A stretch of 64,000 bases of DNA from Haliotis rubra (Eukaryota): assembly GCF_003918875.1 (NCBI RefSeq), contig NW_025766012.1:1-64000 (forward strand), in the 5' to 3' direction. Made by a program: the position numbers and the translations under genes. Below, piece after piece: positions 38,301-64,000 of the stretch. How positions within the stretch are numbered: position 1 is the stretch's first letter; each line of letters opens with the position of its first letter. The notes under the pieces are model-generated. The model made no database searches. It was not told where the DNA came from and was given only the letters and a program-made list of their open reading frames with translations.

Positions 38301-39128
38301 TTCCCACAATTCCTTTAAGTGCTCAGGAAGGGTAGGTGAATGCTGTTGTTGAATTTCATCAACAGATTGGGTAACAGAATTATCTAAGCTAGATTCCCTT
38401 GTCTCAGGCAGCACAGCTTCACATATTCCTAAGTTCATTTTAGGGTGTACGATGACCTCCTTCTCTCCCATGTTAACTACATTAACAGCAATAGTAGAAG
38501 CCTTTGTATCAATTATTCCTCTGGTTAAACATATCCCTTGTTTTTCATATAGGTCCTCAGAGGCTTCGATGATACCATTTTTAGCCATGCCAAGACCATG
38601 AGGAAGAACAACAGGAACCAATGACCCGGAGTGAGGTGGAAGCGTGACTGCCTCTTTAACTTGTACTCTACAAGACAGTATAGCCTCCCCTCCAGCACTA
38701 CAGACCAATAGTGAACCTTGGTTTGTCTTAAGCATCATGTTTTTGTAGTCAATGCTACTAATGTATTTGGTAAGAAAATCTTGACCAATGAGCCCTTCGG
38801 GAGTTATGTCACACACCACAACCTCATGAAGATAGGTAACATCCCCGAAGTCAAGAGGAACAAGGGCTGTCCCAGAAACATTCAGTGTAGAGCCATTGAC
38901 ACCTTGGATATCCGATGTCCATGGTACAAGTTCTGGCTTACATGTAAGGGTATCATACTTTCCTTTAGACAGAAGAGTCACTGTGGAACCAGAATCAACC
39001 AGAAATCTCACCTCCATGGTGTCTACTATTCCAGTAACATAGACACCATTGTCACATTTGTGGATAGATTCGCCAACCTGTCCTATTCTAGGAATGTCTC
39101 TGTTACTGAGCCTTTGTTCCTCTGTCAA
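35362..39128 (-). pseudogene. Gypsy pol (protease, RT, RNase H, integrase with GPY), broken by ~3 disruptions
   Basis: FLVDSGS; YPLPRID, MPFGL, YMDD; LDTDAS, KELLA, RTDN; HHCC, AIDIVGP, HSDQG, VERFNRT; WKGPY. Confidence 0.95.
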
Positions 39129-39139
39129 GATTCGGCCCT

Positions 39140-40522: not shown

Positions 40523-40585
40523 CGTCTCCAGAATCTACCAACCCTAATGGATTCGGACCACTGGATACTAATTATGAAAATCAGT

Positions 40586-40603
40586 ATCCCACTTCTGACA
40601 CCA
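40586..40603 (-). promoter_or_regulatory. Gypsy primer-binding site complementary to tRNA-Leu
   Basis: TGGTGTCAGAAGTGGGAT, 4 nt after the 5' LTR. Confidence 0.85.
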
Positions 40604-40607
40604 AAAT

Positions 40608-43160: not shown

Positions 43161-44993
43161 ATGTCACTGATTGATGTTTTAGCGTTTCTGTGCAGCGCAG
43201 GTGCAAACCTGATCGTGTATGATGGCCCTGGAAACGGGGTGAATCCATCCAACAAGTATGACGTGTATGCGAGCCAAGGTGGGCACAAACACAAATTATT
43301 TGTGTACATGAGCACAGCTGAAAAACGCAACGAAGAAGCCGAAAAGAAAAACAGGACCCAGTCCTGGACGAGTTTTGCGTTCACAGGTGGACCTGTGACG
43401 GTTGAAGTCCATACAAAAGTGAAGGACTTCCACAGGTGCACTGTCAGACCAAGAAGCTACAACTACAAATGTCAGAGATCGGGGTAGAAAACTGCAACAT
43501 TCCACATAGATAAGGCCTTGAAGATGATGTCGGTTGAATTTGACTACGACACTGGTGATGGCTATGCTACTGACATCAGAGACAAGCTGTACATCTTCGC
43601 CGACCCTCCAGAAGGTAAGACGCCCAATCCTCATGATCACGGCGTGTTGTACTACGAACCCGGGGTGCACAAACTTGGAGGCACGAAGACAATCGACTGT
43701 AAATCTGGAATCAAAGAGATTTACCTTGCCCCTGGATCCTATCTCCATGGTGCTCTGGACCTCCGATGTGACGGCATCAGACTCCATGGACGAGGTATCA
43801 TTTCCACTGAATTGTTTGCTCACAAATCCGATGCTGTTGGCTGGGCCATCATCCAGGGAGACGCTGGCCACACAACTGTGGAAGGAATCACGATGGTGGA
43901 TCCAGCCAAGTTTTATTACAGGCTCCTGCATGACCATAATGTCGTGAGGAATGCTAAGATGGTGGCCGCCTGGACAGGCAACACTGACGGAGTTGCCCAG
44001 GGTGACTACGGCTTGCTGGAAGACACCTTCATCATCGCTGATGACGCCTCTGTTAAAGTAGGTTGTTTTCTTGGATATCTGCATGAATTTTATGTGTACA
44101 GGCATGTGTACAGGAATGTGTACATTGAGAAAGAATTTTGGGACAAAAATCTGAATTGCCCTCTGTATCTTTATTTAAGGAGATCGTAAAGGATGTGGGG
44201 AGGATCAGACACACAATTTCATAATTTCAATTTCTCCAGTAGGTTTGTGCTTTGCTTGTGCTGTGTGCCATAAACATCTCAATGTTTTTAAGGGACACAA
44301 AGGCCTGACACATGAACTATACGTCGATAAGAACTTGTACATATTCCAGAAAACAGCAAGATATTACGTAATCAGTCTCATTTTGTTCAGGTTTATATCA
44401 GTATTTGAAGAACTAACGCCTTGAAACTTATCATGTATACATTTCAGTTCCATGGGGACCATCTCAAAATCCAACGTTTGGTAATCTGGCAAATGCAAAA
44501 TGGCGGCGTCATTTTAACCGGATATGATACTGAGAGAGTGGGCGACGTCTCGGTTGAAGACTGTGACGTCATACATACTGATTGGTGTGACTTCAAGGGT
44601 AGGTGTATACATGTCAGCGGGAACGACGCCGTCATTGACAACAGCGGCACGAAACACTTCCACATCACCAACTTACACTTCAAGGACATCCGGGTCGAGG
44701 GACTGGTACAGAGAATCGTCCGATACGCCTTCCTTGATGACGCAGATGGCACTGTCTCTCATGTCACCGTGGAGAATCTGAGTGTTGATGAACAGCCTCT
44801 ACACGACCAGATGCATAATGAATTGTCGGGCTCCAAAAATGGACGTATCGTCGACTGGAAGTTCATTGATTTGACCATTAGAGGCCACTGCGTCAACAAC
44901 TACAAGACACCGGCGGCAGACTTCGTCATTGACGAGCAGACAGCTGATGTGACGTTTGAGTGTCGTGGCCATCATCCACCCTTGGTAGGGTAG
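43161..44993 (+). pseudogene. GH49 (dextranase-like) glycoside hydrolase copy A; exons ~43161-44057 and 44448-44993; in-frame TAG at 43485-43487
   Basis: SWTSFAF, VRPRSY, SVEFD, IFADPP, YLAPG, GRGIIS, NTDG, ADDASVK|GTAGGT...TTTCAG|FHGD..VIWQMQNG..DVIH; AATAAA at 45022. The 5' end is uncertain (possible acceptor at 43182). Confidence 0.8.
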
Positions 44994-45099
44994 TTGTATG
45001 GGGGACGTCCCCACACGTTACAATAAACTGGTTAAAACATTCTTGTTCTCACATCTTTCATTGAGTCGTTTCCTGCTATTGTCGTGTACAATGTCAGTT

Positions 45100-45345
45100 A
45101 ATAATAATAGTAATAGTAATAGTAATAGTCCGCTTATATGGCGCTCATATCCAGGCACATTGCGCTACGTACACTACTATCCCCGGTCATAGGACACTAT
45201 CGTACTTTCCGATACTTTTTCAACTCCCTGGGGAGTATACAGCCATGCTGCCTGTTAGGCGCAACGAACTAAACACTCACATTGCCAGCACATCCTCACG
45301 GGTACCCATTGTACAGCTGGGTGAACTAAGACAATGTGGATCTAA
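45100..45345 (-). mobile_element. SINE 3' part with Deu/Nin-like core and (TTA/TTACTA)n tail
   Basis: AATAATAATAGTAATAGT tail, GCGCTCATATCC, CAACTCCCTGGGGAGTATACAGCC, GGTACCCATTGTACAGCTGGGTGAAC. Confidence 0.55.
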
Positions 45346-45554
45346 GTATCAGTTAGGTTGATTAAAGTTGGAATCCTCACGACAGATCTTCTGATCCCTC
45401 TGGTCTTGACCAATACAAACTATATCATTAATCTGATGAGGACTAGGCGAGCAGAACGGTTCGAATAGTTGGTTCGATGAGATGGTGGAACACTGGGTCG
45501 TTGACGAGCTCGGGGTCAAATTTGAATTTTGCATTTTGCAGACAACGTTAGTAA

Positions 45555-46501
45555 GGGCCTTGTCACACTTCTGCGTATCCTAATTCCTTATGGGTTGCGC
45601 ATTGACATTTCTTTCATACGCAGTCGTACGCACAATGCGCACCTCATATGCATCTCAATCGTTTTCAGTAAGTTTTATGTACCCCGGCATGCGCACAGTA
45701 CGGCCCATTACGCGTGATAGTTTTGGACATGCACAAAACCATTGTGTGTACGCTGTTACACAGGTCATAAGTTATGAATACGTAGTGCATCCGCCCCACA
45801 TCGGTCGAGCGTGGTACGAGTCTGCTATGTGTTCGTGGAGGATAAACGGTTCATACGCGGCAATACGCTTATCTCCGGGCACGAGCTATGAGCCGCGTAT
45901 ATTGGGCGTATACATAGCGTACTTGCAGCGCAGATACAACGCACGCGGAACGAACTCCTCGCGAATGTCGACGTATTGCACTAATGAACACCGTTTGTCC
46001 TGCGATCGGGCAGCACATTGTATTTATTTGTAACTAATGAGAAACGCACAGCTTGCGTACAAATAACGTACTTGCCAAACATTCAGGGTACACTCGAGAT
46101 TTGGTGTAAATATGATGGCTCGGATGGCCCATGTTGACGAAAGGCTGATGTTCACGCTATGGAATCTGCACTGGTAACGAAAACACCGGGAAACAGCCGC
46201 CTTTTTCATAAATCGGGAATACGCTCGGAATACGGCTGCCATTCGTCTGAAGTGCGTGAGGCATACGTTGTATGCGTCCGAAATACGTTCGGCAGACGCA
46301 CTACATAGGCAGATATTTGCGGCTAGAAAAATAGTGTTACGCCAATCATACGTAGCTCATACGCAGTGGATACGCTGAATTCGTTATTTATACGCTAAAT
46401 AATCAAAAATAATCAAAACATTTTGAGCGTACGGGCTGTGTATTGAATTTTTTATAAGGAACTCGTAAGCACTTGACATACGCAAAAGTATGACAGGGGT
46501 G
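45555..46501. mobile_element. Non-autonomous DNA transposon (PIF/Harbinger-like MITE)
   Basis: Imperfect TIR GCCTTGTCACACTTCTGCGTAT / ATACGCAAAAGTATGACAGGGG (18/22); flanked by TAA at 45552-45554 and 46502-46504; many internal TACGC motifs. Confidence 0.6.
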
Positions 46502-46527
46502 TAATTTCTGGTTAATGTCAGGATCTA

Positions 46528-46720
46528 TAGCCTGGAACAGTCTCCCGCAGAGCCTCAGAGACTGTTGTGACTTTAACTCTTTTAGATCCAATCTAAAAAC
46601 ACACATGTTCAAGATAGCCTTTGAACTGTAGCTCTTTACCATTAATCTCATCTTTATCTTGTGCGCTTTGAGCATGCTTTAGCATGGATATATGCGCTTA
46701 ACAAATATGCTATTATCATT
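46528..46720 (+). mobile_element. L2/CR1-type LINE 3' fragment
   Basis: Encodes WNSLPQSLRD..SFRSNLKTHMFKIAF*, followed by a GCGCTTTGAGCATG...GCGCTTAACAAAT 3' stem-like tail. Confidence 0.7.
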
Positions 46721-48970
46721 TTTTACAGATTGTATGCAGCAGAAAGGGTTTGGGTGATCCTGGCACAGTCAGGCTGGTAAGGCTCATCATCAGCTCAGGG
46801 CCCTCGCCCCCTCTACACGCAGCCCAGACAGCGAATGGGACTTCTCCCAGGAAACGCTGCCTAGTCGAACCCACCAAGAACTTTCCGGAGAATATGAAGG
46901 CTCCCCAACACTGCAGCCTTCTGCATTACCCAGAGTGTCAGAAGGGCTGTACTCCCGGTGGAAAACCCGGGCACTCTCTTGATCTGCGTCAAGAGATCAT
47001 GAGGTACCAAACCAAGGGCACCGAGAACAATGGGGAGCCTGGCGACAGTGTACTTGGGATGCAAGCTAGACATTTCAAAAGCGAGGTCTGCATATCTATC
47101 ATGCTTTTCATTAATCTTTCCAATCACATTGGTGTCAAAAGGGACAGAAAATTCAATGATATAAATAAATTCATTGGCTTTATCAAAGGAATTCTCCTCA
47201 GGCTATATATGGGCCTATTCCAGAGAAGTTTGAAAGCATCATTTTCCATGACGCCCTGGACATGTTCAGGGTCGTACCATGGATGGACCTCGGAGTCAAA
47301 GCCACAGGCATGTCGGAGACGGTAGTAAAAGCAACGAGCCATGCCATCATGTCGTTTAAGATATGCTGTTTGTGTCAAGGAAGGGCATCCACTGACAAGG
47401 TGTTGGGCAGTCTCTGTGAATTCATTGCAAAGTCGACATTTCATATTGATATTTTCTTTAGGAATCACATTTAGGCGATTGCGAGTGGGAAGTGACTGGT
47501 CCTGAACAGCAAAAAGGAAGTCCTCAGCTTCACATTTAAGACCAGCCGACTTCATCCAGGCGAAGTTGTCGGTGGGATTGCTATTCGGTTCAACACACTG
47601 TATGTACACACGATGCAATGGCTTCTCAGAAAGCTTCTCCACAAAAGACCGACGCTGGGCAGACTTGGTGAAGGACTTCACCTGGTTTACTCCCATCACT
47701 GTACCGTCCAGCAGTACATCACCATCAACAAAATCAACCTCAAATCTCAGATTCTGTCCAACAACCTTGGCACGCTTAAAATAGCTGTGGAATTCCTTGC
47801 TTTTATCATTAGTATTCACATGCATCACTAGAGGATCATCTGATAAATCAATATGTGCAAAAGTACACAAAAAAATTCTATCATGAAGAGCCTCCACATT
47901 AATCAAACCCCGACCTCCAGAACTGATTGGCATGTATAAACGCATGTGTGTTGGCAGGAATTCTCCTCAGGCTGTATATGGGCCTATTCCAGAGAAGTTT
48001 AAAAGTATCATTTTCCATGATGCCCTGGACATGTTCAGGGTCGTACCATGGATGGACCTCGGAGTCAAAGCCACAGGCATGTCGGAGACGGTAGTAAAAG
48101 CAACGAGCCATGCCATCATGTCGTTTAAGATATGCTGTTTGTGCCAAGGAAGGGCATCCACTGACAAGGTGTTGGACAGTCTCTGTGAATTCATTGCAAA
48201 GTTGACATTTCATATTGATATTTTCTTTAGGAATCACATTTAGGCGATTGCGAGTGGGAAGTGACTGGTCCTGAGCAGCAAAAAGGAAGTCCTCAGTTTC
48301 ACATTTAAGACCAGCCGACTTCACCCAGGCGAAGGAGTCGGTGGGATTGCTATTCGGTTCAACACACTGCATGTACACACGATGCAATGGCTTCTCAGAA
48401 AACTTCTCCACAAAAGACTGACTCTTGGCAGACTTGGTGAAGGACTTCACCTGGTTTACTCCCATCGCTGTACCGTCCAGCAGTATGGGTAGGCCGGTGT
48501 CATCTTGACGCGTGTGAGAGCAGCACCGATCGAGTTCGATGAGAATGGAGGTTGGAGATTGACGTACACGTCTACCAATGACGTCCGGGATCCCTGACGT
48601 GTTCAAAGGGGACGTGCAGTGCTGGCCTTGACATGAAATAGGGCTTTGTAAGCATTAGGCACGACGGATGCAAAACCATCTTTGAAGATTAAATATTATC
48701 CAAAAGTTGTGCAGTATATTCCTGTCCCTATCGTCTTGGCCTGTGATATAGACGTGTCATCTTTGCAGTCGTTTTATATTCGCCGCGACTTTTGCACAGG
48801 CAACTTGTTGCAACCGGCCTCTTATTTAAATGGTGGTTTGCAACCGCCTCTTTTCTTTCTGTAGAAGCCACCATTCTGACAGATCTGTATTGTGCTAGAG
48901 TTGTTACCGTTTGCTGGTATTGGGCCAACATCTCGGCAGGACCATGTTTGTGTTCTGCAGACGTCGCAAG
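46715..48970 (-). mobile_element. R4/Dong-like non-LTR retrotransposon (restriction-like endonuclease type), internally deleted and partly duplicated
   Basis: RLYMP...GGRGL, AQDQSLPTRN, CRLC..ET.QHLVSGC..LA..YLKRHD (CCHC), LPIVLGALG, MQKAAVLGS; ~530-bp duplication 47187-47716 vs 47957-48486. Confidence 0.85.
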
Positions 48971-49030
48971 ATCAATAGTCTTACTTCCTGAGAAAATGTG
49001 TTAAATAGTGTAATTGGTTCTTAGAATACA

Positions 49031-49200
49031 GGGGCGGTGGGGTAGCCTAGTGGTTAAAGCGTTCGCTCGTCACGCCGAAGACCCGGGTTCGAATCCCCAC
49101 ATGGGTACAATGTGTGATGCCCATTTCTGGTGTCCCCCGCCGTGATGTAGCTGGAATATTGCTAAAAGCGGCGTAAAACCAAACTCAGTCAGTCAGTCAG
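49031..49200 (+). mobile_element. tRNA-derived SINE (family 1)
   Basis: GGGGCGGTGGGGTAGCCTAGTGGTTAAAGCG...GGTTCGAATCCC...GCGGCGTAAAAC..(TCAG)n. Confidence 0.9.
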
Positions 49201-49461
49201 AACGTCACTCGATACATCTATATTTAGTCGTAGATGGCGGGAAAGAGGACGTTTTGGGACATCACTATCAACACCTACAAGGTATATATAATCAGTATGT
49301 TATAAGGAGTAGATGACAACGAGGAGCATTAGTTGTTTATTTCGGCATGTAGAAAAATATACACAAAACGTTGAATTGAATTAAAATGATATGCGAAATC
49401 TCAGCAACTATATAAAACACGTGAAATATTTCTATCACCCTCTAGTAATTTCTTTCAGTCA

Positions 49462-52256
49462 TTTAGATCTCTTTGTAGCATACCCAACACGAAAATGTAA
49501 TATTGGATGTGGTAGAATTATCAATTATGAATCGCCCTGCGCCAGGGGTTGAAATACAGCGTCCGCTTACAGACAAATTAGCAAATAGCCAATCAGTCAC
49601 ATAGCCGTTGGGTTTATAGCATAGCCGCCTGCTATTTCATTCCTGAGTTGGCCAGTACTTGGCTGTGATCCAACTGAGACATCTATAAACCGGACGTTGG
49701 AGGAAGTACCACGTGTCCCTGCCGGCATTGTCCAGAAAACAAAACGAGGACACAAACCTTCCAGACGAATGTTTTGAAATACTACATCACTCATGTTGAT
49801 GACTTTGACGTTTCCGGCCAGATCGAACACTGCATCGTTTCTACTTAACATGTCACATTCCGGGCCGCGGAAAGTACACCAGTCCATGAAAATCACGTCA
49901 ATATTGGTGACGGTGAAGGTCACGTTCAGCCCACCAGCCTGTTTGGAAAACGGCACCATTTTGCATTTGCCAGATGACCACTCTCTGTATCGTCATATCA
50001 TTGTTGTACACCTGAAACGTAATGGGATATCTGATCATTATCGTGTTACATAATATCATCTACATGCCTGGAGTTTAAGGGTGTCTTCTGCGCGGGAATT
50101 CTTTTTCATGTCCATACACATTTATCAACACTGTATTGATCTTATCCTTCAATTATGGTTGTATTGCCTACAGTAATGTTTCAATCTGTGGCCCTAGCAA
50201 TAAATAAAACTATATACATTAGAAACATGACGAATTGATAACTGATAATTAATCTGTAACCATAATTATGCAAAACACACAGAGTTGTTAGATGTTAAAG
50301 TGTACATTACCTTGAGTGAGTCATCATTGGCCATGATAAAGACGTCCTCCACTACGCCTCCTACTCCCATCTCAATGCCGTCGCTATTGTAGGGACAGGC
50401 ACCCACCATCTTTACCTGTTTGATTATGTTGTTTGGACTTCCGGCAAGTATGAAAAACTGCTGGGGGTCGCTTAACGTGATACCTTCAATTGTGTGATTG
50501 GAGCCTCGTGCAGTGTTGATCAACGACCATTGAAATCGTTTGTCATGGAATTTGTACTTTCGGCCTGAACAGATTCCTCTTCCATGGATCTTGACCGTTG
50601 TGTTGTCCTCGGTAATGAACCCTCCATCGACAAAAGCTCCGGCACTGATGTAAACTTCTTTAATGCTGGAGTTTAAACTGACTTGACCACCAAGATAATG
50701 CACACCGACATCAAAGAACAAAACGGAAGGGTCACTGTTAGAGGGAACATCTCTCTTCAGAGGATCAGCAAATATCAGCAACTTGTCGACTATTTCGGAC
50801 TTCCAACTGCCGTAGTCATTATCAAACTCTACAGACATCATGCTAGAATTCCGAGTCACTGTAAACCTTGCTGTATTGTTCCCGACCCTTCTACAAGCGT
50901 ATCCGTAACTTGCTGGACGAACCAGACACTGACTGAAGTCAGTCTGCGTTCTGACCTCAACCACTACTGGACCACTACTGAACGCAAAAGACGACCAGGA
51001 CACAGAGCGGTTGGGATGGACATAGGGAATATCGGCATGTCTGTGGTTCGAGGTCGTCTGGTAAGTGAAGGTACTTGTAACGGTAACATGCCATTCCTAC
51101 TCCAGTGAGAGTAACTAGTGTTATGTGCGCGCCCTTTTTCCTTAATTATTCACGTCTGCACAACTTTCACCCATAACAGTAGGTATCATCTGAAAGATCA
51201 TGTTCTCACATTTCTTAGTGAGTAATCTGTTTTGTTATATCTATAATCTTGGAAACATACCTTCGCTACAAAGTATACCAACCTACTTCCTGTAGCTCAT
51301 TTAAATCCCTATACCCCATACTAAGTTCATATTATGATCATAAGACCCAGGTAGTCTGATAGGGAAGTTTCTCAGCTTGCCATCCACGTATGGATTTATA
51401 ACTTTACCATCACCTTAGTTAGTAATGTCGTATGCTTTCGGAATTGAAAAAGCACAATTCCTTGGGACTGGCGGGTCTGAGAGGGTTGTCCAGTTAATTG
51501 TTTCTTCCGACGTCCGCCCATTCCCCTTATCTAGACCATGGTAAAGCCCATCAGTGCCGAACATCGCCACTGCTCTAAGGAACATAGGGAGGACCTCGGG
51601 AAGCCGGACATGGGTAAATATGGTACACCTCCTTCATATGCTCTATGGGGTTGCTTTGAATAAGCCAACTGTCAGGATTTATATTGACTAGACTTCCAGA
51701 GAGTATGTCTATGTCTATTCCGTCTTTTTAAGCCTTATGAAGAATTATATTTAGTTCCTAGACTTATCCCCGGTCCGTGCTTCCCTAGTCCATAATCTAT
51801 TTTTGTGTTTGATCCACCCCGTTCCACTATTTGTAATTGTCTGGCAGTGACCATTGTGTCTTGTACTCTATGATTGAAGATAACAATATAATGTCATTTT
51901 CACGCAACCTGTGTTTGTTCATCTTTGACTCCTAGTATAGTAGTTTGTGAAAACATCCTTTGGGACACTAGTGTGGAAGTTTGGTTTGCCTAAAGCTACG
52001 TTTCTGTCTGCTATTTTTATGTTACGGTACGGGAACTAAGTCAGCAGTTCACCAGTATACTGCGAGGGGTCAGGCCGCCGTAACATAAATTGGGGGAGGC
52101 CGCCGTAACAGTACTCAATAATGGATCCCCAAGACCAACCAAATCCTCATACTTATCTGATGCCTCCATGGTCGGAGGTGCAGGGTATATGACCAGCTCG
52201 GACACACACCCGCCCACAACGGCCATTACTAAACAGGTTGCTGAAAGAATCTCCAT
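49462..52256 (-). pseudogene. GH49-like copy B (inverted duplicate of C); exon 1 52256-50311 interrupted by an LTR insertion; exon 2 50011-~49462 with indels
   Basis: Near-identical to copy C. NSDG..NDDSLK|GTAATG; TTTCAG|GTGTAC; 8-bp deletion at ~49912 and 8-bp net insertion at ~49620 relative to C; the stop TAG of C is TGG here. Confidence 0.9.
51076..52110 (+). mobile_element. LTR remnant (solo-LTR-like, 1035 bp) inserted in exon 1 of GH49 copy B
   Basis: TGTAACGG...CCGTAACA termini; 5-bp TSD GTACT (51071-51075 and 52111-52115); the empty site is seen in copy C. Confidence 0.9.
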
Positions 52257-52969
52257 GGCGTTTGTCGGTGACTTAACTAAGATGAATGGCTACCTAGAAT
52301 ATTATTTATCAGAAGCAGGATCATAGCAGATATCCTATATCTCTAATCACTGTGGCCTAGACGACGGGTGTTCCATCTGACAAATACCTTTCTGTTTATC
52401 TATGTATACAAGATAACGTATACAGAGTGTGTCTCAGGTTACATTTCTCTATGTCATAACATATTGTTGCATTGCAGATAAAGAATAGTATTGACAGGTG
52501 TTCCAATAAACTCTCTCGAAACATGGTTGTATATGAAGCCTCAACGACTAAACCATACATGGGCATGTGCACCAGCTGTCATCCAATTAACGCTGCATAT
52601 GAACAGGAATTTCTGCTTTTCCACTCAATGTGCAAAAATCAAAGTTCAATGTAAATCAATGCAAAACACATGAACACATACAATACTGTTGTATCTATAC
52701 GCGTAAAAGGCAGACAGGCCCATACACCTCTTCAAACCTAACAAACAATAACATTGGGGCCATGCCAGCATCAAAGTCACGTGATTCACTAGCATGCTAC
52801 CCATACAGAACACGCTATCCACAGAAATAATATATCTGTCCCAGATGTTGGAATGCACGTCTTGTATGGGCTCATGTACTCGTTATCCGATCCTGTACAT
52901 ATCAATCGACTTGATAAAAGATTCATTATCAGGTAGCCATTCATCTTAGCGAAGTCACCGACAAACGCC

Positions 52970-54642
52970 ATGGAGATTCTTTCAGCGATCTGTTTAGTAA
53001 TGGCCGTTGTGGGCGGGTGTGTGTCCGAGCTGGTCATATACCCTGCACCTCCGACCATGGAGGCATCAGATAAGTATGAGGTTTTGGTTGGTCTTGGGGA
53101 TCCATTATTGAGTACCTTCACTTACCAGACGACCTCGAACCACAGACATGCCGAGATTCCCTATGTCCATCCCAACCGCTCTGTGTCCTGGTCGTCTTTT
53201 GCGTTCAGTGGTGGTCCAGTAGTGGTTGAGGTCAGAACGCTGACCGACTTCAGTCAGTGTCTGGTTCGTCCAGCAAGTTACGGATACGCTTGTAGTAGGG
53301 TCGGGATCAATACGGCAAGGTTTACAGTGACTCGGAATTCTAGCATGATGTCTGTAGAGTTTGATAATGACTACGGCAGTTGGAAGTCCGAAATAGTCGA
53401 CAAGTTGCTGATATTTGCTGATCCCCTGAAGAGAGATGTTCCCTCTAACAGTGACCCTTCCGTTTTGTTCTTTGATGTCGGTGTGCATTATCTTGGAAGT
53501 CAAGTCAGTTTAAACTCCAGCATTAAAGAAGTTTACATCAGTGCCGGAGCTTTTGTCGATGGAGGGTTCATCACCGAGGACAACACAACGGTCAAGATCC
53601 ATGGAAGAGGAATCTGTTCAGGCCGAAAGTACAAATTCCATGACAAACGATTTCAATGGTCGTTGATCAACACTGCACGAGGCACCAATCACACAATTGA
53701 AGGTATCACGTTAAGCGACCCCCAGCAGTTTTTCATATTCGCTTAAAGTCCAAACAACATAATCAAACAGGTTAAGATGGTGGGTGCCTGGCCATACAAT
53801 AGCGACGGCATTGAGATGGGAGTAGGAGGCGTAGTGGAGGACGTCTTTATCATGGCCAATGATGACTCACTCAAGGTAATGTAACACTTTGACATCTAAC
53901 AACTCTGTGTGTTTTGCATAATTATGGTTACAGATTAATTATCAGTTATCAATCCGTCAGTTGTGTCGAAGTATAATCCAGGATAATCAGCATAATGTTG
54001 GTAAATGTGTATGGACATGAAAATGAATTCCCGCGCAGAAGAAACCCTTAAACTCCAGGTATGTAGATGATATTACGTACCACGGTAATGGTCAGATATC
54101 CCATTACGTTTCAGGTGTACAACAATGATATGACGATACAGAGAGTGGTCATCTGGCAAATGCAAAATGGTGCCGTTTTCCAAACAGGCTGGTGGGCTGA
54201 ACGTGACCTTCACAGAGTGAAAGTCACCAATATTGACGTGATTTACATGGACTGGTGTACTTTCCGCGGCCCGGAATGTGACATGTTAAGTAGAAATGAT
54301 GCAGTGTTCAATCTGGCTGGAAACGTCAAAGTCATCAACATGAGTGATGTAGTATTTCAAAACATTCGTCTGGAAGGTTTGTGTCCTCGTTTTGTTTTCT
54401 GGACAATGCCGGCAGGGACACGTGGTACTTCCTCCAACGTCCGGTTTATAGATGTCTCAGTTGGATCACAGCCAAGTACTGGCCAACTCAGGAATGAAAT
54501 AGCAGGCAATAAACCCAACGGATATGTGACTGATTGGCTATTTTCTAATTTGTCTGTAAGCGGACGCTGTATTTCAACCTCCGGCGCAGGGAGATTCATA
54601 ATTGATAATTCTACCACATCCAATATTACATTTTCGTGTTAG
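52970..54642 (+). CDS. GH49-like glycoside hydrolase copy C; exons 52970-53875 and 54115-54642; in-frame TAA at 53744-53746 (pseudogene or error)
   Basis: Signal peptide MEILSAICLVMAVVGGCVS; SWSSFAF, SVEFD, IFADP, GRGICSG, NSDG, NDDSLK|GTAATG...TTTCAG|VYNND..WQMQNG..GWW. Confidence 0.85.
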
Positions 54643-55434
54643 GTATGCTACAAAGAGATCTAAATGACTGAAAGAAATTTAAAGAATCCGAGGGTAATAC
54701 AAAGGCTTGAGACGTGTTTCTGAGTTGCTGAGTTTCCGCATATCATTTAATTTCAATGCTGCAATGAATTTTGTTATTTACGCAGGTCGTTGGCCTTTAT
54801 GTGGAAATATATCATTATTGCTCCTCTTCGTTTTTTTTCATATCATTATCATTATCATATATTTGATAACTGAATTTGAACACCCTCATAGTAACCCTTT
54901 CCCTTTTGTATTCTGAAGTAGATGTTTTCAGGAACGTGTTCCTCCTGAGGTACTTACTCGTTGCAAAAACAAATGAAGTGCATGAAGAATGGAAACAACT
55001 GATGATGCATTTGACAGCCTATAGTAAATGATACTACTAATCAGGTTGTCCTAGTATACACAATCTTTCCAGTAAAAGTCAAACATAAAGAAAAAAATGT
55101 TACTTGTGAGACCCTTGTCCATGTTTTGGGTATTACTTGTTACACTTTCGTCGAAAACGTAAATTCAAGACAACATCAGTTTCCGAGTTGTAGGAATGTG
55201 TCGATTTACGACGTGCGTGTGAGTGAGTGTGACAAATATTTGAGCTAATTCAGGGTGAACAGTTTGACAAATGGCTGATTGAATGAAGAACGATCTAACC
55301 CAACCTCGTGTTGTCATACCCGTCAAACATCATCCACAGTACATGGCGACAAGTGTGGGTTCTGAACAGAGCAATCCTCTCGAACAAATATTATAAAGCG
55401 TGTTTTAAAACATAGAATATATTTCCAGCGACTA

Positions 55435-57427
55435 TCATCCAATGATATGACCAGTACCACATGCAAAGTTGATTCTGTTTGTTGTGTGGGTGTCAACAGA
55501 AAAGTGTCCCGCTCCCGCGTCACTGATACAATGGCCGCCATACCGGAGATTGACAAACTCCCAGTTCTGGACATGAGCTCCGCTGTGCCTGCTATATCGT
55601 TATGCATGCTCCTTGACACGGATTCGACATTGATGTTCTCGAAACGCAGATTGCTAACTTTTCCCACAGCTCCATTGTAGAGTTTCCATTCCACCAGTCT
55701 CGGACATTCTCCCTCGATTCTGATGTCCTTCAGAATGATGTCATGGACCTCAAACTCATGGGTGTGGCCGGACACCGTGAAGACGGCGGCATTAGGCTGA
55801 AGGTGACAGTTATCTCCCTTGGTAAGCGCACCAGTCCATGTGTATGATGTCTACGTCGGAGACACGGATACCATGAACTTTCCTGGCCGTCCACCAACCC
55901 ATCTGGAAGATGGCACCGAACTGCATCTGCCACACCACTGTTCGTCTGATGGTCAAGCCCGTATGGAACAGCTGCAATGGATGATGCTCTGGTAATACAG
56001 TAACTCATCTCAAATCTAAAATAGACAAAATTGTTAACACTGCAAGTAAAATCACTGGAGTCAGATTTGAATGTTTATCATCAATATATGAGCGGCAAAT
56101 CGTGAATCAAGCTGTCAAAATCATATCTGACGGTACTCACTACTTAAATTCGGAATACAACCTTCTCCCTTCAGGCCGCCGCTACAAAGTTCCAATTGTG
56201 AAAACTAAGAGAGCCCGTACATCCTTTATTCCAAGTACCATATCTCTCTTAAACCAATGTGAAGATGCCTAAATCAAAGAATTTATGTAAATATGTTTGG
56301 TATCTCTCTAATGTGCCAGTAGCTCTGGTGATGTAACACAAATTCCTGAAAAGGCATTAAAGTATTATTCTATTCTATTCTACATTGTTATGAAATACAT
56401 TGGTATCAACAATACTGCTTAACAATTTAGATAATCATGGTTCATTACCTTTCAATGATTCCGATCATTTAGTGACATATGGTTTATCTGTAACTTGTGC
56501 TGTAACTTATACACATACCTTGATTGAGTCATCATTCGCCATAACGAAACTGTCCTCCACTAAGCCGTCCTCGCCAACGTCAAATCCGTCAGAGTTGATG
56601 GTTCAGCCTGCTACAAATTTGACGTTTCTGACAACGTTGCTGTTTCCAGAACTAACGTAGTAATATTCTTCAGGGTCAACAACAGTGATGCCTTCCAGTG
56701 TGTGATGATCACCTTTTTTCATATTAACCAGAGCCCATTGGAAGTCTGGATCGTGAAACTTGTACATTGCGCCTGATAGGACTCCTCTCCCATGTATTTT
56801 TACTCCCTGGTTTCCCGTTGTCCTGAAACCACCTTGGACATAAGCTCCAGGTGCCAGATAGACTTCCTTGATGTGCCCATCCAGAACCTTCTGGCCATGG
56901 AGGTTGTGCACGCCTACATCGTAGTACAGAACCGACGGGTCATGCCTGGATGGGATGGATGTTTCTGGTGGGTCAGCGAAAACCAACAGTTTGTCCTTTA
57001 TGTCGGCCTCGTTGCTTCCATAGTCGTAGTCAAACTCCACAGACATTAACTTCGTGTTTGCTGTTACAGTGAATAGGGCAACCTTATTTCCTGCTCGGTG
57101 ACACTTGAAGCCATAACTCTTTGGTCGAATGAGACAGTTGCGGAAGTCCTTCTGGGTGTGCACTTCAACAGCGACGGCGGATCCAGAAAAAGAAAACGAC
57201 GTCCACGACACAGATCGTCCTGGCTCGATCTTCAGTAACTTCCCCGAATACTGGACCCTGCTGTCGGAAGTGGAGATGTACGTGAAGCTCCGTTCTTTGG
57301 CACCACCTTGACTGACGTAAATGTTGAACTTGTCAGACGCCTTCTGTCCTTGTGGATGGGGATAGACGGTCAGGTCGCAGGCCACAAGGGGAACGCAGAT
57401 CACTAACGTTAAGAAAAGCGATGCCAT
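55435..57427 (-). CDS. GH49-like glycoside hydrolase copy D; exons 57427-56519 and 55971-55435; TGA at a conserved Trp (56603-56605) and small indels in exon 2
   Basis: Signal peptide MASLFLTLVICVPLVAC; VYLAPGAYVQG, GRGVLSG, NSDG, NDDSIK|GTATGT...TTGCAG|LFHTG..WQMQFG..GWW; ends CGTGHIIG*. Confidence 0.85.
56100..56383 (+). mobile_element. Rex1/Babar-like LINE 3' fragment in the intron of copy D
   Basis: LLPSGRRYKVP..KTKRARTSFIPSTISLLN and (TATTC)n tail. Confidence 0.7.
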
Positions 57428-57468
57428 TGTGGCGATTGTCGGCCCAACACTAGATGTAAGTATCCTAG

Positions 57469-57474
57469 TTTATA
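57469..57474 (-). promoter_or_regulatory. Candidate TATA box of GH49 copy D
   Basis: TATAAA on minus ~42 bp upstream of the ATG. Confidence 0.4.
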
Positions 57475-57699
57475 CAGCCTACTGACCTCTTTGACTATAT
57501 ATCAGATAAGCCATGTTTGTTCCAAGTGTTATGGCGAACAAATGGCACTGTTATATATATTCGTTTACTGGAAATTCGATAGGGTCGTTTGCTTCAATCA
57601 TAATTACTGTTTTCATCTTAAGACAAAATATAGATATTTTTCACTTCAGTTTAATTATGCTATCGGACAGGAAGACCGTAGAGGACTTGTTTTCTTGTT

Positions 57700-58070
57700 G
57701 GCAGACTTATGGGACCATGACTATGATTATATCCGATTTGGAATCACGTGTTGCAAAACATGTTTCTAAACAAATGAGTAAATATAGAACGTCAGCTACA
57801 GAGAATGTTCCGTATCGTTGATCCGCCTAAACAACATACATGTAGTCGCAGAAACTCAGGATAACAGGAGTCATTGAACTAAACCCTGGAGACGATGAGG
57901 CTGTAGACAGAGTTGTTCTGGACGTTCTAAGGGATGTTCACGGTTTTAAAAACGGTCGCAGATATAGACAGTTGTCATAGCATTGGGTAGAAGTAACCAG
58001 GCCAAGTCCAAAGCAGGGTGGTTGAGTTTGTCAGCTACAGGGACAAGAACAAGGCAATGCAAAACAAACG
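57700..58070 (+). mobile_element. Degenerate LINE ORF1 (Transposase_22/L1TD-like) fragment
   Basis: SRRN-LRITGV.E...DIDSCH..G...P...VEFVSYRDK pattern across frames. Confidence 0.45.
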
Positions 58071-58824
58071 AAAACTAGGCACTGTCCCTTTATTCTAAGA
58101 TTTCCTCCCCCAGCACTATTCAAAGCTGGTGAAGTAAACCGGAAAATATTAAAGGTACGCTTGAATTACTCTGTATATCTTTATTTGTTTCTCTCAGTAT
58201 ACATGTATATACAAGGATTCAGTATTTAAGAAACATATAGAACTAGAAAACATCTATGACGACACCTTTTGTACAACGGTATTTCTTCCTAAAACATCTC
58301 TATTTATATGTTCAGCCTAGAGAAAGTAGCCAAGTAAATTGTTGGAGTAGATTTGACAACAGTACTGAATCGGCTTTAGATATTTCTTGTTAGCAATTGT
58401 TGATGATTTAACTGAAAATTGACTTTCTCAAAGAACTCTTCATGTAACCGATATCATCGCTGGAAAGACTCAGCGTAACGTCCTAAAAGAACCCACCAGA
58501 GTCACACAAACTGCAAGTACACTTTAGATCCAGGTATAATTAGTGAGGATATAAATGTCAGAAAGTGGTGTGATAGAATTTGATAAAACAATAAGCGATC
58601 ATAAGTGGACATATTACCATAGATGTAGACATTTCAATGTCGACTCTTAAAGGCAAGTCTTGTGATGGTATTTAAAACAAGCTGAACGCACCTATAGGAA
58701 GTACAGTTTAGTTTTCCTTGTTTTACGATTGTAATAATGTGGATGAACCATGTGATGCGTTTACGAACGCTTCGATGATGAGATAAATGTAGAGTCTATG
58801 TACCGTCTAAAACTGTGTCTGAAA

Positions 58825-59029
58825 GAGTGAGTGAGTGAGTGAGTTTAGTTTTACGCAATATTCCAGCTATATGGCGGCGGTCTGTAAATAATCCATCCTG
58901 GACCAGAAAATCCAGTGATCAGCAGCATGAGCATCGATCTGCGCAATTAGGAACCGATGACATGTGTCAACTAAGTCAGCGAGCCTGACCACCCGATCCC
59001 CGTAAGTCGCCTCTTACGACAAGCATGGG
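58825..59029 (-). mobile_element. SINE (family 2), 5'-truncated
   Basis: (GAGT)n tail shared with family 1; TSD-like GTGTCTGAAAGA/GTGTCTGTAAGA. Confidence 0.8.
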
Positions 59030-59802
59030 GTGTCTGTAAGACTTAATGACAAACTATGTAATGGTATAACTGCAATATCAGACGCGAATGTAGGAAAAGG
59101 GCCAAATTATCAAAGAAAGAAATCGATTTACTTACAAACAGAAAACAGCGTGACAACGTTGGTTACATGACAAGTTTTCAAACCTTGATGAATATATTTT
59201 TTTAACTTTATGCTGTTATAAAATCTTTATATTGGAAATTGGTTCGCAATATCGTAAATGATTATGGCACGCCGAACAGATTTTTATACTCTTAAACGGG
59301 TTGGAAACTGCTTTCAGAACGCAGGACGAAATGTAAGCTGTGTTTATTTGATATCATGATATCGCTTCTTCATTTTCGAAAGATTTATATTATCTGACAC
59401 GGTTTAACTTACGCAACTCGAGTAATCTCTCTTAACCATCTACAACATTAAGGCATTCAATTGATTCTTTTTTTTTTCCTTCAACAATTAAATTGTGAAC
59501 CAGTCTACCATTAGATGTGGGGAAACTTGAATCTGCTTCAGCATTTAAGGCTCAAATACGATTGATTAAAAACTCTGTGCCTCTTTACTTTTCCTATGGT
59601 ATTAGAAAATTACAACTGGTCCGGTATGTCAGTATGAGAATGATGAACATTTATCTTTCATAATTTCCACTGTAATTCCACAGAGAGATGCTGTGTTTGC
59701 TGGTTTAAATAATATTTTACATAATAGAATACCCTTGCCCCGATGTCATTTAACATAGCAATGCAGGTCCCTCCATCAGTGAGAATCAGAATATGTTCAA
59801 AT

Positions 59803-60213
59803 CAGGGGTCGATTTAAGGAAATGAAGTCTACTTGTACCCAGTGCAACCTAAGGAAATCACCTTGTTGCACCAAACAAAACCAGGTTGCACCTGCTGCTT
59901 AATAATCATAAAATCTTATATAATGCTTGAGTTTTGGTAAAGCCGCTTTAGAACAGTATTATAACAATAGGAATATGTAGTTATCTTACTTCCCAAACTT
60001 TCATGAACAGCAAGTCCTTCAGTCACTGTCCTACAATAATCAGAGTCACTGTTCCAAGTCAGTTCCTCATCATTCTGTTTTCCACCTGAAGTCTGTGTTC
60101 TTTGAACACAAAATATTAACATGCACTTGGCGCAGGTTGATATACATAAGATGTTGCATTTAGTAGTTTCAGGTCGCGCCAGTGCAAGTTCTAAATGCTT
60201 AAATCGAGCCCTG
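59803..60213. mobile_element. hAT-type MITE
   Basis: TIR CAGGGGTCGATTTAAG / CTTAAATCGAGCCCTG (15/16); 8-bp TSD GTTCAAAT/TTTCAAAT. Confidence 0.8.
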
Positions 60214-60686
60214 TTTCAAATGTATCCAAATGTATGTAAACGACAATAAAACTAAACGATTTCTCAGATTGTAATTTCATAGCAAAGTATTACTTTTATT
60301 GTTTACTCTCTCCTTTTTTCCATTTTCACACATTCTGTTTATCTATAATGAAAATATACGTATGTAACTGCTCTGAAAGGAAAAGCTTTTTCTAAGTTGG
60401 ACAACTTGTGTCCAATAGTTTTGTTTCATGAATAGGATATGTTTAAACCGAAACAATAAATTCCACATACGATGCAGTCGTACCATATGTTTTAGAAATA
60501 GACACAGTTCCAATTATCCAACACATATTACATAATACTTGATATTCGGGGTTTTATCTCTATAGAAGGTAGGCACTTATCTTAGTGGAACAAGGTTATG
60601 GTGGTTCTGATTAGACGGGATGGTCACGTGCGTCACCAACTACATATGTAAGTTTTGTTGTCAAAGTCGGCAGTTCCCGCCACAGC

Positions 60687-63600
60687 ATGGTCGGTCTCTG
60701 TGTTCTGGTCGTTCTCGTCACCCTCGCCTACGAGGCAGTTGGAAACGTCATTGTGTACCCACATGCCAAGGGTCCGGCGGCTTCCAACAAATTCAAGGTG
60801 TATGTGAGTCAAGGCGGAAGGAAACATGAGAGTTTCACGTACATCAGCACATCCGACCAACGTTCCCACGAAGCATCCCATGTCCACCCAGGACGGTCGA
60901 TGTCCTTCACGTCATTTGCCTTCACTGGTGGTTCTGTGACGGTGGAAGTTCACACCCAGCGCAACTTCCACAACTGCATCGTCAGACCCAAGAGCTACAA
61001 CTACCACTGCCGCAGAACGGGAACCAAGGTTGCCCAATTCACCGTGTCAAACACCAAAAAGTGGATGTCCGTAGAATTTGACTACGACTACGGCAGCAGT
61101 AACGGAGGCCCCGACATAACTGACAGACTACTTGTGTTCGCAGATCCACCCGAGACACACAAACCAAACAAGAACGACAACTCTGTTCTGTATTATGACG
61201 TAGGGCTTCACAACCTGAACGGTCAGAAACAACTGGATTCACACGTAAAAGAAGTATACTTAGCACCAGGAGCATATGTTCAGGGTGGATTCAAGACCAC
61301 TGGGAACCAGCCAGTGAAAATCTATGGCAGAGGAATAGTCTCTACTTCTATATACAAGTGGCACGATTCAAGGTTTGAATGGTCAATAATCAACATGGAC
61401 AAGGGACATTCTCACGTAGTTGAGGGGATCATTATGGTGGATCCTGAGGAATACTTCTACCGTGGACTGAGCGATCACAATACGGTGCGTTATGTGAAGA
61501 TGGTTGGATCGTGGGCCTTCAACTCCGATGGTGTTGGTATTGGACATGATGGACTGGTGGAGGACTGCTTCATCTCTGCAAACGATGATGCACTGAAGGT
61601 TTGGGATTTGTTATTCAGACATTTGTTTGATGTTAGAGTTGAACGCTGAATTGTACATGACTCAAATAGTGTCCTAGTATCAAATTAAAATGACGTACAA
61701 AAGAAAGTACACACCTGGTGCTTTTGGATTACTTTCTAAAGAACGACGTAAATGTTTTGAAAAGAGTTTTTACACTTATATATGTCATAGACTTTCCTAA
61801 TATGTTGCCAAAACACCACAGATATCATGCCCAATTGCGAAGTTGCCAGTCAAAATCACAACACTTTTCAAACAATCCCAAAACACCAGATGTGTACTTT
61901 CTTTTGTACGTCATTATAGAAAGGTCTTATGAACATGCGCTGTGAATATACAATGCCATTTAGAAAGTGGTCAAATGTAAAACGTTATATTTGGGATTTA
62001 AACTTTCTCAGTAAAAGTATAGCTTCTAGTACTTTTGTTAGGTTCAGTCCCATCCGGGATTAGAACCCACACTCTCAGAGTCAGGCACGTAATTATGGAA
62101 TCCTGGAAGGGACATTGTCGCGTTGTCGCATTGTCGCGTTGTCGCCCTCTCAAATACAAGCAAAAATTAACCAAACGCGACACGCCGATAACGCTGACAT
62201 TTAAATCGCCCCATTTGTCGCATTGTCGGCGATGTCGCTTTGAATAATATTATTTTTATTCCTCCAAAGGGCGACACGCGACATAGCTTACATTAATTTT
62301 CTTTAGGTCAAATAGGTCGCGTTGTCGGCGCTTCGTGTTTTAGTGAATTGTTAGGCTTCTTTTCACACATCTTAGATAGGGCAGGACGTTAGCGACAACG
62401 CGTTTACATATTTTGACCTTGAAAATTGTCGCTATGTTGTCCCCTTTGGAGTTAATAGAAAAGTATTATTCAAAACGCTAACAACGACATCGCCGACAAT
62501 CGCCACAAATGGGCGAAATGTCACTTTTCGTATCTGATGTCGCTGCAAGGTCGCGCTTTTGGTTTATTTTGCCTCACTTTACTTGTTTTGAGAGGGCGAC
62601 AATGCGACATAGCTGAATAATGTCCCCTTCTCGGATTCCATACGTAATCACCATCATTACACAAAGTCAGCCAACTCAGCCACCACGGCTCCCACCAAAA
62701 AGTCGGACAACTGGTAATCTTGATCACGAACTTTGTCTACCCGTCTGACAAGTGTAAAGTTACACGGTTCCTACACACAAGCATGAATACGCAATGCTAT
62801 TTAGAAATATACGTTATTCAGGTATTTAGACACAGATAGATGGTAGAGAACTGTGAGGAACGTTTACACAACAGTAAATAACTCGTCTCTAACAATGACT
62901 GGTTAAGTCTCCTTTGTTGTATGGATGAGCAAGGTTTTACGTGGAACACTACTGACGGATGAATAGGGTTCAGGGAACAGTTCCCAGACATGATGAGATG
63001 ATTCCAAGGAAAAGCACTGTCCGGATGAACAGCCTTCGATGCATTCTTTCAATTACAGCCTATAAACACATGTAATATAGAACACTGTAAATGTTACTTC
63101 CCATTTGAGTAATGTATAAACAAAACTGGAACGTGTTTGTTATGTTTAGGTATACACGGACAATATGGTGGCGCAGAGGGTGGTCATCTGGCAGATGCAG
63201 AACGGAGCTGTCTTCCAGAACGGCTGGTGGAGCGGCAGAGACATGAAGAAGGTCAGAATCAGCGACATCGACGTCATTCACACCGACTGGTGCACTTTCA
63301 AAGGTTCCAACTGCCAGATCAGCGACAACGATGCAGCTTTTTGATCTCGCTGGTGACACAAAGCATTTTGCCATGAAAGGTGATGCCTTCATCTTTACCA
63401 ACATTAGAGTAGAAGGGTCTTGTCCGCGTATCGTGTACTGGAAGATGGCAAACGGGGCATCGGGTACGGCTTCCAACGTCCGCATCGTCAACTTGTCAGT
63501 GGAGTCGCAACCTGGCCACGACAGCCTCCACAACGAGATTGCAGGGAATTCTGGAGGAAGGGTCACCAACTGGCAGTTCAACAACTTTAAGATTGGCGGT

Positions 63601-63696
63601 AAATTCATCTCCAACCCAGGCCAGGCAGACTTTCACATCGATGCCCACACTACCAGCAATATCCAGTTTCATTGTGGAGGATCTATCATAGGATAA
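60687..63696 (+). CDS. GH49-like glycoside hydrolase copy E; exons 60687-61598 and 63150-63696; single +1 base near 63338-63342, probably functional
   Basis: Signal peptide MVGLCVLVVLVTLAYEAVG; VYLAPGAYVQG, GRGIVS, NSDG, NDDALK|GTTTGG...TTTAG|VYTDN..WQMQNG..GWW..DVIHTDWC; ends CGGSIIG*; ATTAAA at 63732. Confidence 0.88.
62000..62700 (-). mobile_element. tRNA-derived SINE head split by the 62094-62642 MITE
   Basis: On minus: A-box-like TGGCTGAGTTGG (~62670-62682) and B-box-like GGTTCTAATCCC (~62056-62067) on either side of the MITE. Confidence 0.55.
62094..62642. mobile_element. Non-autonomous DNA transposon with TAT..ATA termini and 6-bp TSD (IS3EU-like)
   Basis: TIR TATGGAATCCTGGAAGGGACATT / AATGTCCCCTTCTCGGATTCCATA; TSD CGTAAT at 62088-62093 and 62643-62648; internal TGTCGC repeats. 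Confidence 0.75.
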
Positions 63697-64000
63697 ATCT
63701 CAGAAACAATGGCTTCAATGCATTTTGTTACATTAAAGACCTCATTAAAGCTTCTTAAAAGTGTTAAGTTCGATGATATCTCGAAAATTATGCATCAGTG
63801 AAAAATATAATGTCGGATGCAGGTCTCTATCCATACCTCGATCAAATGTTCCAGAGGTGTTTCGTACTGTTGCAACCCGTGGGGCAGGATACACTACTCA
63901 CTCTTTTGCAAATACTTAACACACTATTTGATAGTGATTCATAGACACATGTATCAAACAATTCTGTCTGGCGTCCAAAATCACACGCATAACTCAGAAC

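Follow-up and report, generated by a model that had tools for sequence, protein, structure and literature searches.

Does a tidy cluster of five paralogous enzyme genes in an abalone genome encode five working enzymes, and how did genes of a microbial type come to lie there? We addressed this for a stretch of 64,000 nucleotides of Haliotis rubra (positions 1–64,000 of contig NW_025766012.1, assembly GCF_003918875.1), referred to below as the window. Positions 43161–63696 of the window hold five related copies, named A to E, of a gene for a secreted protein that resembles glycoside hydrolase family 49 (GH49) of clan GH-N. An earlier description of this DNA, made from its letters and reading frames and called the sequence-only reading here, took them for five digestive enzyme genes that a grazing animal had acquired from a microbe and amplified. 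In our analysis no copy has an intact open reading frame as assembled. The reading that we prefer, with a probability of roughly 0.6, is that the cluster is largely or wholly dead in the window sequence, and that its copies arose and decayed by birth-and-death evolution within an ancient family of secreted GH49-like proteins that is found across molluscs.

Five paralogous copies, none intact as assembled

The longest exon translations served as queries in tblastn searches of the whole window. They recovered five paralogous units in alternating orientation (+ - + - +), all between 43.1 and 63.7 kb, and zero further copies. Each unit has two exons and a single canonical GT..AG intron of phase 0 directly after a DD..K motif, with one additional residue at this junction in copy A. 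The conceptual products of A to E are 475–485 residues long, and all five contain the motifs SWxSFAF, RPxSY, SVEFD, (V/I)FADP, YLAPGAYV-type, GRG, N(S/T)DG, DD, WQMQxG..GW and DVI. The arrangement of five two-exon units given by the sequence-only reading is therefore borne out by tblastn, intron and translation analysis, and every motif on its list was recovered in all copies. It had also counted four clear signal peptides; signal-peptide-like N-termini do exist, but the number needs correcting, as the N-termini are strongly hydrophobic and signal-peptide-like in five of five copies. The features of the cluster are as follows.

43161–44057, plus strand: copy A, exon 1, with a signal-peptide-like N-terminus, the beta-sandwich and the start of the beta-helix with NTDG and DD; splice donor AAA/GTAGGT (from tblastn and translation)
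44448–44993, plus strand: copy A, exon 2, an open frame with a terminal TAG at 44991–44993; splice acceptor TTTCAG
49484–50011, minus strand: copy B, exon 2 (from frame changes in tblastn and the nucleotide alignment of B with C)
50311–51069, minus strand: copy B, 3' part of exon 1, with NSDG and NDDSLK; the conserved Trp before NSDG is changed to Cys
51077–52110, no strand assigned: insertion in exon 1 of copy B, ~1,024–1,029 bp
52110–52256, minus strand: copy B, 5' part of exon 1, with the start codon and a signal-peptide-like segment
52970–53875, plus strand: copy C, exon 1 (from tblastn and translation)
54115–54642, plus strand: copy C, exon 2, an open frame with a terminal TAG
55435–55971, minus strand: copy D, exon 2, with two frameshifts
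56519–57427, minus strand: copy D, exon 1, with an in-frame TGA
60687–61598, plus strand: copy E, exon 1, intact, 304 codons; 98.7% identity to the RefSeq H. rubra 'dextranase-like' protein P0001
61599–63149, plus strand: intron of copy E, absent from an RNA contig of a related species
63150–63696, plus strand: copy E, exon 2, with its frame shifted by an extra C at 63337

Copies B and C form an inverted duplication whose two arms (49375–52311 versus 52912–54757) are 91–97% identical, and the 5' ends of the copies lie ~700 bp apart. The window is collinear with a public H. rubra contig, QXJH01001358.1, which comes from an independent assembly (loci L001 and L002). As the two are only ~95% identical, the window represents a different haplotype, a duplicate or a sister species.

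Tblastn, translation and alignment revealed stops, frameshifts and an insertion that together leave none of the five copies intact, so that the description of the cluster as five genes does not stand. Copy A has an in-frame TAG at 43485–43487, where the public H. rubra orthologue has CAG (Gln) at the same codon. Copy C has an in-frame TAA at 53744–53746, a codon that reads GGA or GAA in copy B and in the public contig. Exon 1 of copy D is broken by an in-frame TGA at 56605–56603, a codon that is Trp in all relatives and TGG in the public contig, and exon 2 by an extra G in a GGG run (55816–55814) and a 1-nt deletion near 55586–55578. These two frameshifts are identical in the public contig, whereas the H. 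asinina orthologue (P0009) reads through intact. Compared with the public allele, which is intact, exon 2 of copy E has a single extra C at 63337 (GCAG[C]TTTTT), which shifts the frame, and six additional in-frame nucleotides ~40 nt downstream of it. The extra C does not change the length of a homopolymer.

In copy B, exon 1 is split by the insertion at 51077–52110, which has TG..CA ends, short inverted termini and a 5-bp target-site duplication, GTACT, and is consistent with a solo long terminal repeat (LTR) or another mobile element. It is missing from copy C and from the public contig, in which L001 is uninterrupted. Relative to C, exon 2 of B lacks 8 nt after 49913 and has 8 extra nt at ~49626–49618, with ~285 nt between them out of frame. 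The terminal stop codon of B has become TGG, and the Trp-to-Cys change lies beside the catalytic NSDG. The lesions of A, B, C and E and the TGA of D are specific to the window, as the three stop sites read CAG, GGA/GAA and TGG in the public contig, which also lacks the extra C and the insertion in B.

As TAG, TAA and TGA each occur once among the nonsense codons, a variant genetic code is excluded, and stop-codon reassignment and selenocysteine were rejected. Extra short introns that would skip the stops were likewise rejected: alignments to intact paralogues pass the stops without gaps. Around the TAA of C (53729–53761, compared with 50457–50425 and L001), window C is closer to one of the public copies and window B to the other; this swap pattern suggests gene conversion, or a swapped orientation of the inverted B/C arms between the assemblies.

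A probable distant branch of GH49

A family profile was made from 38 homologues and searched against the PDB, and P0001, the orthologue of copy E, was used as the structure query. In phmmer searches with E exon 1 and P0001, GH49 structures were the only matches. The profile aligned over both domains to Arthrobacter AoDex (6nzs, E-value 3e-59), Aspergillus isopullulanase (1wmr/3wwg, 2e-54) and Penicillium Dex49A (1ogm, 3.5e-47); the sister families gave 7e-9 to 2e-6 (GH28) and ~0.1 (GH87). An AlphaFold2 model of P0001 (mean predicted local distance difference test score, pLDDT, 92.6) shows an N-terminal beta-sandwich followed by a right-handed parallel beta-helix. When this model was compared with the PDB by Foldseek, the top seven hits were all GH49, with template modelling (TM) scores of 0.75–0.78 over both domains, and the next was GH28 at 0.44.

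The catalytic residues are also in place. In the phmmer alignment to 1ogm, D281 of P0001 lies opposite Asp376 of Dex49A, and D300/D301 lie opposite Asp395/Asp396. All 38 homologues have D281 and D300, and at least 90% of them have D301; (S/T)DG and DD are retained in all five window copies. Profile, fold and aspartate triad thus all fit the GH49 identity that had been proposed from motifs, and the best structural matches, seven of seven, belong to that family. With 28.8 and 26.5 bits, the exon 1 pieces of B and C exceed the cut-off of the Pfam model Glyco_hydro_49N (21.3), and the catalytic-domain models Glyco_hydro_49 and IPU_b_solenoid matched only below their cut-offs. Three GH49-specific models match 15, 9 and 4 of the 38 homologues, and 2 homologues match GH28.

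Some databases name relatives of these proteins 'endo-polygalacturonase'. A regular-expression scan of the five conceptual proteins found neither the G/SHG nor the RIK motif of GH28, as the sequence-only reading had noted, and this test speaks against the name. GH28 membership was rejected on the missing motifs and on E-values far weaker than those for GH49. Like the solved GH49 enzymes, the mollusc proteins combine a beta-sandwich with a right-handed beta-helix and have the GH49-type W..NG..Q.GW turn where GH28 has G/SHG. Unlike them, they are ~100 residues shorter (~480 versus 550–590 aa), with shorter loops, and identity is 18–22%. The solved enzymes come from fungi and bacteria, whereas the mollusc genes are animal genes that contain an intron, and their substrate is probably different. 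Taken together, these comparisons would place the family as a distant, compact (~480 aa) subfamily of GH49.

A mollusc-wide family with an old intron

We searched 5.8 billion proteins with a word-indexed method and 1.8 billion representatives with an exhaustive profile method, which gave 3,757 hits at E ≤ 1e-3. Named animal homologues were found in Haliotis rubra, H. asinina, H. cracherodii, Patella, Lottia, Littorina, Batillaria, Pomacea, the chiton Liolophura and the pearl oyster Pinctada. No animal phylum besides molluscs was among the named hits in either protein set; the spread of orthologues across Metazoa that would have spoken against the sequence-only reading was not seen. The intron after DD..K occupies the same position in chiton, Lottia, Haliotis and Pinctada, and Pinctada has three more introns. 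As the position is common to these four, the gene and its intron are older than the divergence of chitons, gastropods and bivalves. An acquisition by a grazing abalone lineage does not agree with this distribution, as gastropods, a chiton and a bivalve have the gene with the same intron.

Other Haliotis species have orthologues of each of the A, D and E lineages, and B and C are a recent pair. Patella and the caenogastropods show separate expansions. The family thus evolves by birth and death of copies. One gene model of Pinctada imbricata (P0055, locus L065; 776 aa over 28.7 kb) appears to join two tandem GH49-like genes into one.

The closest sequences outside molluscs (32–37% identity) come from the choanoflagellate Salpingoeca urceolata, the protist Artemidia motanka, which we take to be a diplonemid, and several further contigs. 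One of these contigs, L058, has clearly eukaryotic neighbours (zf-AN1, TMEM220 and eIF2D PUA). A second large search, with the choanoflagellate protein as query, found no additional named eukaryotes. We created an unrooted IQ-TREE phylogeny of 69 sequences, with canonical GH49 sequences left out. In this tree the molluscs form one clade (support 100/100) inside a eukaryote clade (100/99) with Salpingoeca, Artemidia and L058. The eukaryote clade stands apart from all named bacterial sequences, which belong to Verrucomicrobiota, Lentisphaerota, Planctomycetota, Bacteroidota, Paenibacillus and Actinomycetota.

Bacterial GH49-like proteins of the same length (~450–480 aa; L003–L057) occur in Lentisphaerota, Verrucomicrobiota/Opitutaceae, Planctomycetota, Bacteroidota and Paenibacillus. 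They are 30–35% identical to the mollusc proteins over nearly their full length, share the motifs and fall into the same subfamily in the trees. They differ in being prokaryotic and intronless, in being often fused to extra domains or placed inside polysaccharide-utilisation loci, and in being split from the eukaryotic clade by a well-supported branch (100/99).

Transfer or vertical descent

The origin of the family is most likely an ancient transfer from a microbe to the mollusc stem lineage, because the gene predates the split of the mollusc classes and its nearest relatives are genes of marine protists, followed by those of Verrucomicrobiota, Lentisphaerota, Planctomycetota and Bacteroidota. 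In the history that we propose, a bacterial-type gene would have entered eukaryotes once, in ancient times, and would then have spread or been lost patchily. In the ancestral protein, a signal peptide would have been followed by an N-terminal beta-sandwich and then by the right-handed beta-helix that bears the GH49 aspartates. The mollusc stem lineage would have acquired the gene before the Cambrian radiation, and later duplication and decay would have been lineage-specific, the abalone window presenting a cluster that may be dying. The transfer postulated by the sequence-only reading is kept in part: a microbial-type gene does occur in a single animal phylum, but its nearest relatives are genes of protists, not directly those of bacteria or fungi. 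The maximum-likelihood tree that it had called for gives a mollusc clade inside a eukaryote clade among bacterial sequences, although the tree is unrooted.

The same tree could be read without any transfer, as the record of an old holozoan or still older eukaryotic gene that descended vertically and was lost in all animals but molluscs. Choanoflagellates are the closest relatives of animals, and one of them is among the sister sequences; the eukaryotic sequences form one clade (100/99), and the gene is as old as crown molluscs. However, vertical descent needs separate losses in sponges, ctenophores, cnidarians, deuterostomes, ecdysozoans and the other lophotrochozoans, and no named hit from those groups was found among the 5.8 and 1.8 billion proteins. 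The distribution in protists is patchy too (one named choanoflagellate, the presumed diplonemid and few others), which is typical of transferred carbohydrate-active enzymes. We therefore regard vertical descent as unlikely, if still worth weighing.

Three properties of the phylogeny count against the ancient transfer that we favour. The grouping of the molluscs with a clade of seven protist sequences is weak (82/53). The trees are unrooted and lack canonical GH49, so that a position nested within bacteria rests on midpoint rooting and sampling. Several of the 'protist' rows were deemed eukaryotic only by clade membership or weak context.

Likely substrate

The bacterial relatives offer a view of the substrate. 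We examined 55 bacterial loci with same-length relatives for genes within ~4 kb. A sulfatase was found in 26 of the 55, GH127, a beta-L-arabinofuranosidase, in 7/55 and GH43 in 6/55, and 35 of these loci have at least one of the three. In several loci they are immediate neighbours of the GH49-like gene, one locus lies beside SusD, and one relative (P0056) is a GH43 fusion. In five Bacteroidota loci (L018, L024, L025, L027 and L028), which are putative polysaccharide-utilisation loci, the GH49-like gene is recurrently flanked not only by sulfatases and GH127 but also by genes of the ADP-ribosylglycohydrolase family.

GH49 is a polyspecific family: Helbert et al. (2019; PMC6442616) found that two of its distant members, from Bacteroides plebeius, break down the sulfated arabinan in the cell walls of Chaetomorpha and Cladophora. 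These endo-hydrolases (EDY96541.1 and EDY96565.1) are distant GH49 members that are not active on alpha-glucan, and the sulfatase, GH127 and GH43 loci of the bacterial relatives fit a substrate of the sulfated arabinan type. B. plebeius was not returned by a genome scan with the FAD(P/A)PE peptide pattern, so either the pattern is absent or the species lies outside the scan. As in other GH49 proteins, the activity should be polysaccharide hydrolysis in endo mode. Because of the bacterial gene neighbourhoods and the one published activity, a sulfated arabinose-containing polysaccharide of algal cell walls is the likely substrate, rather than dextran. Of the two substrates that the sequence-only reading had considered, alpha-glucan and sulfated algal polysaccharide, the neighbourhoods favour the latter, in its sulfated arabinose-type form. 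Two points weigh against this assignment. Sulfatases are abundant in these bacterial phyla, and the neighbourhood counts come without a background rate. The characterised B. plebeius enzymes lie outside our tree.

Database names imply something else, namely that the intact members of the family attack alpha-1,6-glucans, which would make them true dextranases or isopullulanases. Dextranases and an isopullulanase are indeed the nearest solved structures, and the catalytic triad is identical. Identity to these enzymes is only ~18–22%, however, the mollusc proteins are ~100 residues shorter, and GH49 is polyspecific (PMC6442616). The bacterial relatives stand beside sulfatases, GH127 and GH43, with no alpha-glucan genes among the scanned neighbours. 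To our knowledge, dextran is no notable part of marine algal diets. A dextranase activity is thus improbable in our judgement.

Is the decay real and recent?

The insertion in B is genuine and no assembly artefact, because it is bordered by a target-site duplication. As the two frameshifts of D are identical in the window and the public contig while P0009 is intact, D appears to be a genuine, old pseudogene that arose before the two sequences diverged. The lesions in A, B, C and E, one to a few in each, would be young and specific to the window sequence.

The coding differences point to a late loss. The ratio of nonsynonymous to synonymous substitution rates (dN/dS) was 0.26 for B versus C, 0.20 for window E versus public E and 0.49 for A. 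Values near 1, as under relaxed constraint, were not seen among the tested pairs (0.20–0.49). In C and D, the differences from the public orthologues are still depleted at second codon positions. As dN/dS is 0.2–0.5, any loss of function would be recent, which suggests that constraint lasted until lately. On this timing the copies would have died only lately, unless some of the lesions are null alleles or errors.

A 2,290-nt RNA contig of a related species (~92% identical) covers 60604–61596 and 63148–63750 contiguously. It removes the predicted intron of E exactly, within a 2-nt ambiguity of the GT..AG ends. As this contig joins both exons, the E orthologue is transcribed and spliced in that related species; the transcript does not derive from a window copy. 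The comparison with contigs of sequencing runs covered copy E only. Those of DNA run X1 match the window at 99–100% and agree with it at the listed variable sites of E exon 2, and runs X2 and X3 have the intact, public-type allele of E. X2 bears the same species label as X1. Within the intron of E, positions 61654–62793 form a very high-copy repeat, with summed contig depth rising from ~150 to 1e5–1e6 in three DNA runs and with many rearranged joints, consistent with an abundant element like a short interspersed nuclear element (SINE) or a miniature inverted-repeat transposable element (MITE).

The sequence-only reading, with five working and recently amplified digestive enzyme genes, would survive if sequencing or assembly had introduced the lesions, or if the sequenced individual carried rare null alleles. 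The dN/dS values of 0.20–0.26 for E and for B versus C are as such a cluster would have them, and A, C and E have one lesion only. The public E allele is intact and annotated, the public A has Gln at the TAG site, the E orthologue is transcribed and spliced, and an intact-type allele occurs in X2 despite its sharing a species label with the window-like X1. Yet to create three nonsense codons independently within 7.2 kb of coding sequence, substitution errors would have to be implausibly frequent, while the X1 contigs agree with the window at 99–100%. Nor is the extra base of E a homopolymer error. The interruption of B is a genuine insertion with a target-site duplication, and the frameshifts of D are reproduced by an independent assembly. 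RefSeq annotates no protein at the orthologues of B, C and D on the public contig. We accordingly give a cluster of five functional genes only a small chance.

Some observations nevertheless weigh against a cluster that is largely or wholly dead. Low dN/dS and few lesions per copy are equally expected of a functional family with some assembly errors. X1 is possibly the very sample behind the window assembly and would then not be independent. Position 63337 is outside the listed X1 sites, and the X1 contig that spans it has 7 gap columns that are unlocated. Because the many 1-nt indels in the public copies of B, C and D resemble poor polishing and are possibly errors, we gave the breakage of these copies less weight, and it lends little support to decay.

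Genomic setting

The cluster is embedded in animal DNA, as it is surrounded in the window by a BEL/Pao element, a Gypsy element, remnants of long interspersed nuclear elements (LINEs) and a Ras-caspase gene, and in guanine-cytosine (GC) content it does not stand out from the rest of the window. Contamination of the assembly from bacteria or a protist, for which the sole point is the microbial affinity of the protein family, was rejected and has next to no probability, given spliceosomal introns at a mollusc-conserved position, copies lying between animal BEL/Pao, Gypsy and LINE elements and the Ras-caspase gene, collinearity with an independent abalone assembly, and uniform GC. The sequence-only reading, which had argued from introns and flanking transposons that the genes are not bacterial contamination, was right in this respect.

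The neighbouring features are as follows.

15578–21875, minus strand: open reading frames (ORFs) of a BEL/Pao LTR retrotransposon, with Peptidase_A17, an integrase zinc-binding domain and a DUF1759 gag-like domain
25579–27009, plus strand: one long ORF of 476 aa, with a Ras-family GTPase domain and a caspase (Peptidase_C14) domain
31056–42625: ~11.5 kb present in the window and missing from the collinear public contig (L002)
~35750–40303: Gypsy-type element within the preceding segment, with ORFs for protease, reverse transcriptase–RNase H (RT-RNase H) and integrase
47124–48606, minus strand, between A and B: two neighbouring, partly overlapping ORFs with ~90% mutual identity and a zf-RVT domain

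As the segment at 31056–42625 is absent from the public contig and contains a Gypsy-type element, it is a lineage-specific retrotransposon insertion. The ORFs at 47124–48606 are tandem remnants of a non-LTR retrotransposon. The orthologues of A and E lie ~100 kb apart in the public contig versus 17 kb in the window, which gives the public contig ~87 kb of additional sequence from A to B; the two assemblies may truly differ in structure here, or one of them may contain an artefact. No Rfam match for structured RNAs was found in the 43–64 kb region.

Implications for the family and its hosts

As RefSeq already names such proteins 'dextranase-like' or 'isopullulanase-like', the genes themselves are not new. 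In the literature we found no paper on GH49 in molluscs, abalone, snails, limpets or other animals. Microbial-type GH45 and GH28 occur in herbivorous invertebrates, and these are parallels: they too are secreted polysaccharide hydrolases with introns and tandem expansion in a herbivore. They belong to other enzyme families, however, and the GH49-like family differs from them in being mollusc-wide, much older and closest to protist genes. A fuller account, which we put forward tentatively as one possibility, is that molluscs are the first animals known with GH49, in the form of a secreted endo-hydrolase for algal or biofilm polysaccharides of the sulfated arabinan type that would have been taken up from a marine microbe, either a protist or a bacterium, before the Cambrian split of the classes, followed by the gain of one intron and by later expansion and decay.

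Microbial-type carbohydrate-active enzymes of animals show how herbivores gain new diets. A GH49-like family common to gastropods, chitons and bivalves would stand out for its unusual age and, as far as we found, would be undescribed. Its members are candidate enzymes for the breakdown of sulfated polysaccharides of green-algal walls, which is relevant to abalone aquaculture feeds and algal biomass processing, and the automatic 'dextranase-like' names probably misstate their substrate. The abalone cluster also illustrates that a tidy set of paralogues can consist of broken copies throughout, so that copy number alone is a poor guide to the enzymatic capacity of an animal.

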